Part shown: in pieces, positions 15,704 to 19,807 of the stretch
Layout of the letters: each line of letters begins with the position of its first letter
How positions within the stretch are numbered: the stretch's first letter is position 1
NCBI GenBank assembly: GCA_033442325.1
Contig: JAWQFM010000013.1
Coordinates: 1,205,065 to 1,269,064, forward strand
Reading direction: 5' to 3'
Source of the DNA: Salpingoeca rosetta
Taxonomy: Eukaryota; Protista; Choanoflagellata
Length of the DNA: 64,000 nt
Position numbers and translations under genes: made by a program
Notes under the pieces: generated by a model
What the model was told of the DNA's origin: nothing
Databases searched by the model: none
The model's input: the letters and a program-made list of their open reading frames with translations, nothing else

Positions 15704-18700
15704 TCAGGGCCGCCTGTGCTGCTGCTGCTGCTGCTGTTGGTGCTGCTGCTGTTGGTGCTGCTGCGTGCGTTGCAGGAGCAATTGTTGCTGTTGCTGCTGC
15801 TGCTGCAAAATATGCATGAGGTAATCTTGACCCGATGACGGCTGCGGAAGCGAAGAGCGAGACGACTGGGAGAAATGTGGCTGCATTGGTTGCTGCGACT
15901 GCATCGGCTGACCTCGTCGCTGGTGCTGTGGCAGGGGCTGTTGCTGTTGTTGGTGCTGTTGGTCTGGTGGATTGACGGGTTGCTGGCCCGACGATGACAG
16001 TAGTGCTTGAAGCAACTGTTGCTGCATTGGCTGTTGCTGCATTGGCTGTTGCTGTGGTTGTTGTTGTTGTTGTGGTTGTTGTGGTTGTTGTTGTTGCTGC
16101 TGCTGCTGCTGTATGATTTGTAGGATTGCTGATGGCAACAGCCCGCTCAGTCCCGGTGTGGACGGCGCAGCATCTGTTCGGGGCTGCTGGTGTTGGTGCT
16201 GCTGGCGTGGCTGTTGCTGTTGCTGTTGTTGGTATTGGTGTGGCTGCAGTTGTGGTGCAGATGGGGATGGTGCCTGTGGTTGTTGCCACTGCAGACCTTG
16301 CAGCGGCTGCTGACGTGTCTGTTGTTGCGCTTGCTGCTGCTGCTGCCCTTGTGCGCGTGGCTGCTGCTGTTGTTGTTGCTGTTGAGAGAGCATACCCGAA
16401 AGCAGCTGCTGCAGCGCATTGCTCTGCCCGTCACCGCCCATCATCTGCTCAAGAAACGCATCCGCAGCCCTTGAGGAGGAGCTGGAAGTGGCGATGTTTG
16501 CTGCTGTTGTTACAGCTGCTGCTGTTGTTGTTGCTGCTGCTGTTACTGTTGTTGTTGGTGTTGCTGCTGTTGAGGGTAAGCGGCTGTGCTGCCTGCTGCT
16601 GTGAAGCGATGAGGTGATGGCGTCTCCAAGCAGCGCTGACAGCACGTCAGGTCCCCTCATCCCCGCCTGCTGCTGCTGCTGCTGCTGGTGGTGGTGGTGG
16701 TGCTGTCGTTGCGGTTCATGTGGTTGCTGGTGCTGCGATGGATGTGGGTGTTGGTGTTGCGGTTGTTGGTGTGCTTGGGAGCTGGATGAGAGATGACGCT
16801 GCCGCTGGTGCTGGTGCTGGTGTTGAAACGATGGGGTGGGCGTACCCGCAAGGGTGGACGGTGCAATGGAAAACGGAAGCGTTGCACTGGCATGTGAGAA
16901 GACGGACTGCTGTTGGTGTTGGTGTTGGTGTTGGTGTTGGTATTGCTGTTGGTGTTCGTGATGTTGGTGATGGTGGGGTGTCGCTTGTTGAAAGGCGTCT
17001 TCAAGTGCTTGCTCCTCCTTTTGCGTGTCCCGGTGGTGATGCTGGTGGTGCTGGTGGTGCGCAAAGTCATCTGCTGTCGTTGAATGCACGCCCGACAATG
17101 GATCGTCGCTGAAAGGAGAGGAGGAGGTGCATGGGTGATGAGCACAACAGCAGAAGCAAGAGGTGGGCACGAGACGCGGCAAGCAAGGTTGTAGCATGGG
17201 CACAGTGTGTGTGTGTGTGTGTGTGAATGTATGTTTGTGTGCGTGTGAAAGAGGGTGAGTGAGTGAGAGAGAGAGAGAGAAAGAGAGAGAGTGTGTGTGT
17301 GTGTGTCTGTGCGTGTGTGTGAGAGAGAGATAGACAGAGAGAGAAGGAGTGGGGAATGAATTGAGCTGCAGGCTTCACGTGCGCTCTCACTTGTGGGGAA
17401 GAAGTGGGTCTGGTCCAAGCACGTTGTCGACTGCCAAAGTGGAGAGAAAGTGTGTGTGTGTGTGTGTGTGTGTGTGTGTGTGTGTGTGTGTGTGTGTGTG
17501 TGTGTGTGTGTGTGTGTGTGTGTGTGTGGGTGTGGGTGTGTGGGTGAGTGTGTGTGCATGATGTCCACAACATACGGTACACAGCAAGGGATGTCATCAG
17601 CTCACAACGGAAAAGCAACAGACTTCACATCACTCACGGGAGAAAGGGTCAGCAGCACCCGACAGCATGTCGTTGAGAGACCTGTGATCATGAAAAAATG
17701 ACACACACACACGCACACACACACACGCACACACACACACGCACACACACACACACACACACACACACACACACACACACACACACACACACACACACAC
17801 ACACACACACACACACGCACGCACGCACGCGCGTGAATGAATGCATGGCGCTGGACGAATAAAAGTGGCACGAGAGATTGCATGAAGCAAGACGTGCACG
17901 TGTGTGTGTGTGTGTGTGTGTGTGTGTGCATTGGGCGACATACGCTTGCGTTGAGGCAGGGTGGGGATCGAAGCGATCCAGCAGGTCTCCATATCTGATA
18001 CCACAAGCACAGCCACAAACGGTGTAGAGGAGATTGAACAAAAGTAGGTTGGTCTGTGGGAACAACCCGCTGAACATGTGGACACGGTCACGGCAGATTC
18101 CAATAACACGTGTACACGCCATCCGCCACAACTTAGAGACGACTTGTTGGTTTGCAAGATCTCTGCGACTCACCCTGCAGAGTCGGAGGTGAGGGCGGAG
18201 GTGATGAGGGAATTCAGGTCCATGTCGCCCATTGTGGTTGGCACATCAAGGCCCAGCAGACTACAGCGGGAGACAAAGAGGAGAATGGGGAGAGCAAGGT
18301 TGTCAGGAGAGAGAAAGTGGGTTGTGGCGGACAGATTGTGAGACAGTGCAGGACTGAGGTATGGAGCGGCATTGGGTGCATGACGAAAGCACACGTGTAC
18401 ACAGACACGAGGAGACAGGGGGTGGAGAGAGACAGAGAGAGAGACAGACAGACAGACAGACAGACAGACAGACAGACAGACAGACAGACAGACAGAGAGG
18501 GATAGAGGGAGAGAGGGAGACAGACAGAGACAGAGAGCCACAGTCACAGACGCAGACAGAACCCCCCCCCACCCACACACACACATTGACTCAGACGCAC
18601 GATGATGATGACACGCCTGCGGCGGCGTCCGAGGGTTGGGCGTGCGCGGGCAGCGATCCAAGCCCATGGAGCCCGTCATCGGCACCGCCAGCGCTGGTGC

Positions 18701-19807
18701 TGCTGCGGTTTGCACGTGCACCCCTCCCTCGGCCACGATCACCTCGAGCACGCCCACCGGCTGCCCTCTTGGTGGCTGGCTGTCTCTTCTTTCGCGACTT
18801 TGTCGCACCACCGGCCGCATTTGCAGCCAATGCCGATGATGACGAGCCCCTGCCACCGGCACCACCGCCATCACCGAGTGCAGCGCGCTTGGTCGACTGT
18901 GCAGATCCAGCGTCCCATGCAAGGGACGCTGGGGACGCGTCCATGCTGCTGGTGCTGCCGGCACCGCGCCGTCCGGTCGTGGTCTGACTCGCACGCCGCT
19001 TGCCAGTCTGCTGACAAACGGACGAGAGGCATGTTGGTGAGGGGGACAGTCAACGAGACACAGCTCTGTGTGTGTGTGTGTGTGTGCTGTGATCTCACCG
19101 ATCCACTGGTGGAGTCTCGCCGCCATGTGGACACTGCATCCTGCTGCACAAGCGTAGCGAGCAATGTCGTCAGTGTGTGTTTTGGGAGTTGGGGTTGGGG
19201 AGGGGTATTCTTGGCGAGATGATGAGAGTGGCCGTGGTGGTGTGGCGCATCGTCTTCATGTAACAGCAGGCACCATGTGTACGGAGCACACGTGCTACCT
19301 GTTGAAGAGGGTCGTGGACGCGTTTCCTCAGCAGTTCGAACGTCTCTTGTTCTCGACGGTGCTGTGCGTGAGCAAGGCAAGGCAAGGCAAAGTGACATAG
19401 CACAAGGCAAGATGAGGCAAGCGAAGCCGGCCACACACAGTGACCACTCGGGCAACAAAATCAAGCACACACACAGAGGGAGAGAGAGAGAGAGAGAGAG
19501 AGAGAGAGAGAGAGAGAGAGAGAGAGAGAGAGAGAGAGAGAGAGAGAGAGAGAGAGAGAGAGAGAGAGAGAGAGAGAGAAGAGAGAGAGAGACAGAGAGA
19601 CAGAGAGAGAGAGAACGCATGCGCACACAACACACACACACCTGCACACACACACACCTGCACACACACACACAACACCACACACATGCACGCGCACACA
19701 TGCACGCGCACACGCACACATCACACCTGTAGCTGGATGCGTGAGGTGTGCTGGGCGAACTTTGACTGATGGTGCTCGCGAAAGCGACGCAGCGTCTTCT
19801 CATCCAT
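15704..19807 (-). CDS. Glutamine-rich putative nuclear coactivator with an N-terminal basic helix (weak Mastermind-like resemblance)
   Basis: Exons 19807-19727 (MDEKTLRRFREHHQSKFAQHTSRIQLQ), 19361-19299 (HRREQETFELLRKRVHDPLQQ), ~19140-19099 and ~19007-18615 (NLS-like KSRKKR, RG-rich). Then ~18260-18175 (DMDLNSLITSAL), small uncertain exons, and a long Q/H-rich terminal exon ~17109-15704. The internal exon chain is only partly resolved. Confidence 0.6.
19480..19613 (+). repeat. (GA)n microsatellite (reads as a (CT)n tract in intron 1 of the Q-rich gene)
   Basis: About 50 perfect GA units followed by degenerate copies. Confidence 0.95.

Follow-up and report, generated by a model that had tools for sequence, protein, structure and literature searches.

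Does the locus at positions 15704–19807 of the analysed stretch of Salpingoeca rosetta DNA (64,000 nucleotides, here called the window) encode a relative of the Notch coactivator Mastermind, as an original prediction made from the letters proposed, or a protein of another kind? To our knowledge, Mastermind is counted as an animal-only part of Notch signalling, and a choanoflagellate relative would, if true, place the nuclear half of the Notch pathway before the origin of animals.

A Spliced Nine-Exon Gene Is Expressed From the Minus Strand

The proposed spliced gene exists and is expressed. Its transcribed model comprises 740 codons over nine exons, all on the minus strand, and runs from the ATG at 19807 to the stop codon at 15704–15706, whereby the exons total 2223 nt (740 codons plus the stop) and have GT..AG borders throughout. 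The first mates of the RNA reads placed at the locus always lie on the plus strand, which fits a minus-strand transcript and a stranded library.

The original prediction had joined exons 1 and 2 at 19727/19361, and RNA-seq reads as well as a spliced RNA contig join exactly there. Past position 19365, a spliced contig of X4 and eight raw reads from RNA-seq run X20 continue into exon 1, and 30 of their letters are identical to plus-strand 19731–19760, where exon 1 ends. This junction was read from the loose ends of reads placed on 17840–19479 and not from a joint; four letters (CTGT) are common to both of its sides, with 19727|19361 being the sole GT..AG choice. The peptides quoted for the two exons were reproduced as well, since exon 1 (19727–19807, minus strand, with the donor GT adjoining) translates into 27 amino acids and exon 2 (19299–19361, borne out by RNA depth and its joint to exon 3) into 21. 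The X4 contig runs 156 letters beyond 19365, to about 19886, which gives 19808–19886 as the minimum extent of the 5′ UTR; no ATG is present in this stretch. Intron 1 (19362–19726, GT..AG), which is spliced out in RNA, is GT-rich and carries long (CT)n simple repeats, including a simple repeat of at least 100 nt at 19480–19579.

Further downstream, the depth of the RNA runs drops to zero in introns 2–5 while that of the DNA run X1 does not, and joints were seen in RNA at 19299/19143 and 18174/17994. Exon 3 (19099–19143), supported by an X4 contig piece and the first of these joints, encodes a Ser/Thr/Arg-rich linker of 15 amino acids. Exons 4 (19007–18601) and 5 (18260–18174) are delimited by X4 contig pieces, together with RNA depth for the former and the second joint for the latter; exon 4 holds 135 codons plus 2 nt and is rich in Ala, Gly, Ser, and Arg, and exon 5 encodes the acidic-hydrophobic patch DMDLNSLITSAL. 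Three short exons follow, each with a short acidic-hydrophobic motif: exon 6 (17944–17994; GDLLDRFDP), which is covered by RNA depth and a contig piece and whose 3′ border at 17944 was placed by its GT and the frame, exon 7 (17638–17681; NDMLSGAADPF), placed by AG/GT sites and frame with a consistent X4 length, and exon 8 (17391–17430; DNVLGPDPLL), placed by AG/GT sites and frame. The junctions between exons 6 and 7, 7 and 8, and 8 and 9 were set from GT..AG sites, frame continuity, and the length of the X4 contig. Exon 9 (15704–17108) encodes the remaining 467 amino acids and the stop codon.

An NLS-Like Cluster and a Q/H-Rich Tail Predicted to Be Disordered

The further features on which the original prediction had relied, namely a nuclear localisation signal, acidic-hydrophobic patches, and Q/H tracts, were each found in the spliced protein. 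Exon 4 carries the motif KSRKKR at 18783–18800 within an NLS-like KSRKKR..KR cluster (18765–18800), which suggests that the protein is probably nuclear, as well as a basophilic KRRAS site (18987–19001) and an RG repeat, RGDRGRGRGAR (18714–18746). In exon 9, the patches DVLSALLGD (16622–16648) and DAFLEQMM (16439–16462) are embedded in a sequence that consists of 32% Q and 10% H and contains four LxxLL and eight hydrophobic-x-x-hydrophobic-hydrophobic motifs. AlphaFold2 gave a mean pLDDT of 45.8 for this exon and short helices only at the hydrophobic motifs; the tail is thus predicted to be disordered. The RG repeat and the Q-rich tail suit RNA-granule proteins too. The objection that Q-rich tracts are too common here to be informative was dropped, as only one of the 164 window ORFs of at least 150 amino acids has a Q content of at least 15%.

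The N-Terminal Exons Match Mastermind at Chance Level in Hand Scoring

The claimed relationship to Mastermind depends on the N-terminus. The exon 1 peptide contains six Lys or Arg and three His residues and neither Pro nor Gly, and the sequence remains free of Pro and Gly from Met1 up to an Asp-Pro that all but closes exon 2. A helix across the two exons could therefore span at most about 44 residues, compared to the 58 positions of the MamL-1 Pfam model. The RxHH and QxTFxL letters that had been likened to MAML1 are present, the former in exon 1 and the latter as QETFEL in exon 2. It had been cautioned that this match could be chance. In hand scoring of the same alignment with BLOSUM62, its two blocks reach about 13 bits each, a score to be expected by chance when 40 x 740 residues are compared, whereby the scoring used the MAML1 string given in the original prediction and not one supplied by a tool. 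The RLRRRIE..RYE core, which we take to be the best conserved part of fly and human Mastermind, is partially matched here at a different spacing.

Searches with exons 1 and 2 separately yielded no match to MamL-1, TORC_N, or any other Pfam family at E≤10, whereby queries of 27 and 21 amino acids have little power. In a six-frame scan of the genome, neither exon was among the MamL-1 candidates listed; the only two on the list lie in unrelated places and score 16.5 and 14.9 bits, which is chance level; the MamL-1 (PF09596) cut-off is 25 bits. The same type of scan with TORC_N returned nothing, in this genome as well as in the control genomes. Sequence searches of the PDB with each of the two exons retrieved no Mastermind chain, and the one match obtained for the N-terminal exons, an archaeal hypothetical protein at E=4.6, is attributable to chance. 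No paralogs of exon 1 or exon 2 were found elsewhere in the organism's own genome. Exon 4 matched no Pfam family at E≤10, and neither TORC_M nor TORC_C was matched in exon 4 or exon 9 at the same threshold.

An exhaustive HMMER search through 1.84 billion representative proteins brought up no relative of exon 9, which makes up 63% of the protein (467 amino acids); the self-score of this sequence, determined as a local control, was 885 bits. A word search with this exon gave 0 matches and did not return its own protein either, no relative came up in a scan of metagenome loci for which the polyQ had been left out of the tail, and a feature search of the tail in the ESM Atlas gave no usable match. 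Orthologs that would tie the gene to animal MAML were accordingly not obtained via exon 9 in the word, HMMER, and metagenome searches. With a neighbouring ORF as the query, the word-search database, which draws on the same collection of ~15 billion proteins as the representatives, did give a Salpingoeca rosetta entry that has EukProt among its sources; what was retrieved was only a Salpingoeca rosetta paralog with 30% identity. Since the own protein was not returned and the neighbour led to this paralog only, the proteins of the window seem to be absent from the searched libraries. From these results, the protein appears to be restricted to this choanoflagellate-type lineage.

A CSL Gene and a Notch-Like Frame Are Present in the Same Genome

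By its own terms, the original prediction would have been refuted by a lack of a CSL-type partner. A complete CSL gene is present in the genome (G000:C1, about 709.4–712.8 kb), as judged from the LAG1-DNAbind (30.1 and 23–24 bits), BTD (15.3 and 13.5 bits, in split exons), and TIG_SUH (56.3 bits) profiles. Furthermore, a single open frame of 1789 amino acids on C8 shows EGF-like, LNR, transmembrane, and ankyrin segments in Notch order, with 48 bits for LNR, a transmembrane segment near residues 702–726, and 133 bits for the ankyrin repeats. These repeats are of the consensus type: the best 60 PDB matches are ankyrins and DARPins, and no Notch-labelled chain is among them. A RAM-type WxP motif was not seen after the transmembrane segment. 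The genomic context, with CSL and a Notch-like frame on one side and generic ankyrin repeats and no evident RAM on the other, cuts both ways. Q/H tracts also occur in the ORF upstream of CSL and in the tail of the Notch-like ORF.

A Lineage-Specific Co-Regulator Is the Preferred Reading

As it stands, we regard the gene product as an unremarkable orphan, Q-rich and disordered, that can be assigned to neither the Mastermind nor the CRTC family on the evidence obtained here. With moderate confidence we suggest that this single-copy, nine-exon gene encodes a largely disordered, lineage-specific nuclear co-regulator of 740 amino acids that combines a docking helix at its N-terminus with an NLS and a Q/H-rich tail bearing LxxLL-type motifs. 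The basic, Pro- and Gly-free N-terminus of about 44 residues would fold into an amphipathic helix for docking on a structured partner, for which a transcription factor bound to DNA is the most plausible candidate; nuclear entry would be mediated by the KSRKKR..KR cluster, and the four or five small acidic-hydrophobic motifs encoded by the exons, along with the Q/H-rich LxxLL tail, would recruit general coactivators or, alternatively, provide multivalent contacts of the condensate type. In this way, the protein would serve as an adaptor or co-regulator of transcription. That it is nuclear, that its N-terminus is helical, and what it binds are here deduced from sequence alone.

The tests on the protein itself came out negative or neutral and do not show it to be a Mastermind. 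A true pre-animal relative would lay its helix across CSL and the ankyrin domain that belongs to a cleaved Notch-like receptor and recruit p300 and Mediator through its Q-rich tail, and we consider this very unlikely. RxHH and QETFEL do lie at the extreme N-terminus with a spacing that is about right, an NLS and a Q-rich tail come after them, and the genome offers both a complete CSL gene (TIG_SUH 56 bits) and one frame in Notch order; moreover, Mastermind proteins have little in common outside the N-terminal helix (PMC2770060). Against this stand the missing MamL-1 match for exons 1 and 2 with genome candidates that lie elsewhere, the unmatched PDB Mastermind chains, the short helix, the two blocks at chance score, the partly matched and differently spaced core, and the generic ankyrin repeats without a visible RAM-type WxP. 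In addition, MAML has not been detected in sponges, ctenophores, and placozoans (PMC12166595; PMC2770060), and for this reason the prior for a Mastermind in a choanoflagellate is low. A very divergent pre-metazoan Mastermind whose helix clamps CSL to the ankyrin domain of the EGF-LNR-TM-ANK receptor would be a long shot. If true, the nuclear switch of Notch, CSL, and Mastermind would be older than animals, and it would have been lost, or have diverged past recognition, in those three animal lineages. What is established is a real, expressed gene with a chance-level resemblance to Mastermind in an organism that has CSL and a Notch-ordered EGF-LNR-TM-ANK receptor; as these occur together in one organism, the hypothesis is cheap to test directly.

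Two other readings were weighed against the lineage-specific co-regulator. The multivalency of the RG repeat and the Q-rich tail might instead serve a scaffold of RNA granules or nuclear bodies rather than a partner of transcription factors. RGDRGRGRGAR in exon 4, the 32% Q of the tail, the predicted disorder, and the lack of a recognisable Pfam domain in the exons tested would suit such a scaffold, but RNA-binding domains, RRM and KH included, were not found, and the NLS and the clusters of LxxLL and acidic-hydrophobic motifs point rather to an activator, so that we regard this role as conceivable but rather unlikely. A CRTC/TORC-like coactivator that places its N-terminal helix on a CREB-type bZIP is hardly credible: although the basic N-terminal helix candidate, the basophilic Ser site KRRAS, the NLS, and the activation-type C-terminal tail agree with it, and a weak resemblance had been pointed out in the original prediction, TORC_N was unmatched in the exons taken one by one and in the six-frame genome, as were TORC_M and TORC_C in exons 4 and 9.

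Comparison With Known Coactivators

With Mastermind/MAML proteins, the gene product shares a short basic N-terminal helix (here a candidate), NLS-like clusters, a disordered Q-rich region with acidic-hydrophobic patches, the two short letter matches RxHH and QxTFxL, and a CSL gene in the same genome. It differs in that the exon-by-exon searches gave no profile match, the possible helix spans about 44 instead of about 58 residues, and relatives that link the gene to animals were not found through exon 9; MAML has escaped detection in the animals that branched off earliest, and the ankyrin repeats of the Notch-like frame in this genome are generic, with no RAM motif seen. The helix candidate is also interrupted by an intron here, whereas the basic domain of MAML2 falls within exon 1. 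With CRTC/TORC proteins, the gene product has in common an NLS, Ser sites of the basophilic type, an activation region at the C-terminus, and a helical docking segment at the N-terminus, which is predicted here, but TORC_N (PF12884), TORC_M, and TORC_C were unmatched in the exons tested and in the genome scan. As regards the generic Q-rich LxxLL coactivators, such as Mediator tail subunits and NCOA-type adaptors, a KIX, PAS, bHLH, or other defining domain and sequence relatives are lacking, whereas the composition, the disorder, and several LxxLL and hydrophobic-x-x-hydrophobic-hydrophobic motifs, which are predicted to be helical, resemble those of the protein described here.

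Gene Structure and Splicing

The gene under study is a nine-exon gene that runs on the minus strand from 19886 to 15704. Its first in-frame ATG (19805–19807) lies in exon 1 and is preceded by a 5′ UTR of at least 79 nt without any ATG. The coding exons, all on the minus strand, are located at 19807–19727 (E1), 19361–19299 (E2), 19143–19099 (E3), 19007–18601 (E4), 18260–18174 (E5), 17994–17944 (E6), 17681–17638 (E7), 17430–17391 (E8), and 17108–15704 (E9). All of them have GT..AG borders with agreeing phases and together comprise 2223 nt (740 codons plus stop), whereby the span of the original prediction, 15704–19807, corresponds exactly to the coding sequence. 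Introns 19362–19726, 17682–17943, 17431–17637, and 17109–17390 are full of long dinucleotide repeats. Intron 1 has a GT-rich tract directly 3′ of its donor, as does intron 6, and also a (CT)n tract of approximately 130 nt; in introns 7 and 8, (CA)n lies ahead of the acceptors.

For read mapping over 17840–19479, two runs of raw RNA-seq reads were used together with a DNA-like (X1) and an RNA-like (X4) contig run. The RNA runs gave depth on the exons and zero in the introns, while X1 covered the introns as well. In all read pairs the first mate mapped to the plus strand, as expected for a minus-strand transcript if the library is stranded. Reads show the joints 19299/19143 and 18174/17994, and so does a spliced X4 contig of 1335 nt, which also sets the bounds of exon 4 (19007–18601) and exon 5. 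At 19365, eight reads of the raw RNA-seq run X20 and the X4 contig run on with 30 non-intron letters, which are identical to plus-strand 19731–19760, the end of exon 1. Since four letters (CTGT) are common to both sides, the join is at 19727|19361 if GT..AG is used, and with this choice the reads and the contig bear out the junction that had been proposed from the sequence. The E6/E7, E7/E8, and E8/E9 junctions we infer only from splice sites, frame, and the length of the X4 contig. All four mapped runs, namely the two RNA-seq runs, the DNA-like X1, and the RNA contig run X4, disagree with the window at four sites in exon 4 (18857, 18909, 18910, and 18919). Relative to the window, codon 51 would change from Gly to Ser, and codons 33 (through two bases) and 30 from Ala to Gly, which suggests that either the strains differ or the window carries an assembly error.

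Features of the Encoded Protein

The 27- and 21-residue peptides of the original prediction are the translations of exons 1 and 2, and its layout of NLS, acidic-hydrophobic patches, and Q/H tracts was recovered in full in exons 4–9. Exons 1 and 2 together contain 11 K+R, 5 H, and 7 D+E residues. Since Pro and Gly are absent until an Asp-Pro shortly before exon 2 ends, one helix of up to approximately 44 residues is possible. Exon 4 is Ala/Gly/Ser/Arg-rich and carries a KRRAS site, a KSRKKR..KR cluster (18765–18800), and an RG repeat. One short acidic-hydrophobic motif per exon follows in exons 5 (DMDLNSLI), 6 (GDLLDRFDP), 7 (NDMLSGAADPF), and 8 (DNVLGPDPLL), and another, DDPLSGV, at the start of exon 9. 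In the regions 17391–18260 and 17081–17108 these motifs have the form D-hydrophobic-L ... DP, with a single copy in each of four consecutive small exons and in the start of exon 9, a pattern suggesting that a short linear motif was copied repeatedly by exon duplication. Exon 9 (467 aa) consists of 32% Q and 10% H and contains four LxxLL and eight hydrophobic-x-x-hydrophobic-hydrophobic motifs. AlphaFold2 modeling of exon 9 alone yielded a mean pLDDT of 45.8, with helices only at these two kinds of motif and at the Q-rich C-terminus.

Family and Homologue Searches

Homology searches were run per single exon, with exons 1 and 2 as separate queries. No relevant Pfam family was found for exons 1, 2, 4, and 9 at E ≤ 10, the sole match being a sub-threshold New_glue in the Q-rich tail. 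When all 55.4 Mb of the genome were scanned in six frames with MamL-1, the family of the Mastermind helix, neither exon 1 nor exon 2 was listed; the scan yielded two places on other contigs at chance level (16.5 and 14.9 bits), and control bacterial genomes score at the same level. A PDB sequence search with exons 1 and 2 returned no Mastermind chain, and no paralog of either exon was found in the genome. Queries of 27 and 21 aa give low search power, and these exon-wise results neither support nor refute a Mastermind relationship.

Exon 9 gave no match in a word search, in an exhaustive HMMER search of 1.84 billion representatives, where its own sequence would score 885 bits according to a local control, or in the ESM Atlas and metagenome contigs. 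The word-search database and the representative library are drawn from the same collection of approximately 15 billion proteins. The upstream same-strand neighbour, a 690-aa open frame at 20510–22582 (-) with LRR and Receptor-L-domain matches, has as its best database match PTSG_04244 of Salpingoeca rosetta (only 30% identical; sources include EukProt), so the word-search database holds at least one choanoflagellate protein. Thus, the window's own proteins seem to be absent from the sequence libraries, and the exon 9 tail seems to have no detectable relative elsewhere in those searched. Farther along, a 618-aa open frame at 41604–43460 (-) contains a COR-A domain (60.9 bits), which indicates a ROCO-type protein nearby.

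CSL and Notch-Like Genes in the Genome

The original prediction called for a CSL-type partner, and a CSL/Su(H)-type gene that is complete and spread over several exons is present on the plus strand of contig C1 (~709400–712820; ~3400–6820 in locus L009). LAG1-DNAbind, BTD, and TIG_SUH pieces lie on successive exons, whereby the CSL-specific TIG_SUH scores 56 bits and the BTD match is weak because it is split over exons. A Q-rich open frame directly upstream may be the first exon of this gene. On contig C8, a 1789-aa single open frame at 1984454–1989820 (+) (2455–7821 in locus L011) shows a Notch-like order of Cys-rich EGF-like modules, LNR (48 bits), transmembrane segment, long Q/H-rich cytoplasmic region, and ankyrin repeats (133 bits). 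It has a second LNR-like Cys pattern, and its transmembrane segment is a hydrophobic stretch at approximately aa 702–726, followed by KGAKRR; no RAM-type WxP motif was seen after this segment, and NOD/NODP gave no match in the frame. The ankyrin repeats are consensus-like, and among their best 60 PDB matches, which comprise ankyrins, DARPins, and TRPA1, no chain is labelled Notch. On contig C34, a DSL-domain match at 647389–647526 (-) is borderline (25.7 bits against a cut-off of 24.2); the open frame around it is reported to be 12,438 aa long.

Notch- and Delta-type architectures have been described in a few choanoflagellates (Richter et al., PMC6040629). Mastermind has been found in eumetazoans only, with its weak conservation stressed (Gazave et al., PMC2770060), and in a 2025 survey of 58 animals MAML was absent from poriferans, ctenophores, placozoans, and hydrozoans (PMC12166595). 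Our literature search found no paper that names Mastermind together with Salpingoeca rosetta.

Interpretation

The most likely reading of these sequence features, to which we give about an even chance, is a lineage-specific, disordered nuclear co-regulator. In such a protein the N-terminal helix of exons 1 and 2 would serve as a docking segment, the NLS would belong to the co-regulator design, and the exon-encoded acidic-hydrophobic motifs and the LxxLL motifs of the Q/H-rich tail would be further parts of it. The protein would then act in a coactivator-like manner, without demonstrated family membership. That it is instead a scaffold of RNA granules or nuclear bodies appears unlikely. A true Mastermind relative is very improbable: none of the tests run supports it, and given the absence of MAML in early animal lineages it would require loss or unrecognisable divergence in several of them. 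A CRTC-like protein is the least probable; TORC_N, the CRTC helix family, has zero matches in the genome.

The likeness to MAML1 on which the Mastermind proposal was built (RxHH...QxTFxL) was scored by hand with BLOSUM62 on the MAML1 string as quoted in the original prediction. The alignment consists of two ungapped blocks, one at RxHH and the other at QxTFxL, with a raw score of approximately 21–23 (~13 bits) apiece. According to a hand calculation, a block of this score should turn up by chance about once or more often when a 40-residue motif is compared with a protein of 740 residues. The HH and the F of the match are not known to be conserved in fly Mastermind. The likeness is a lead and not evidence. 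In fly and human, conservation of the Mastermind helix is strongest in RLRRRIE..RYE, with Q.T..L coming 25 residues after RLRRRIE, whereas the candidate has LRRFRE and QETFEL at a spacing of 20 residues.
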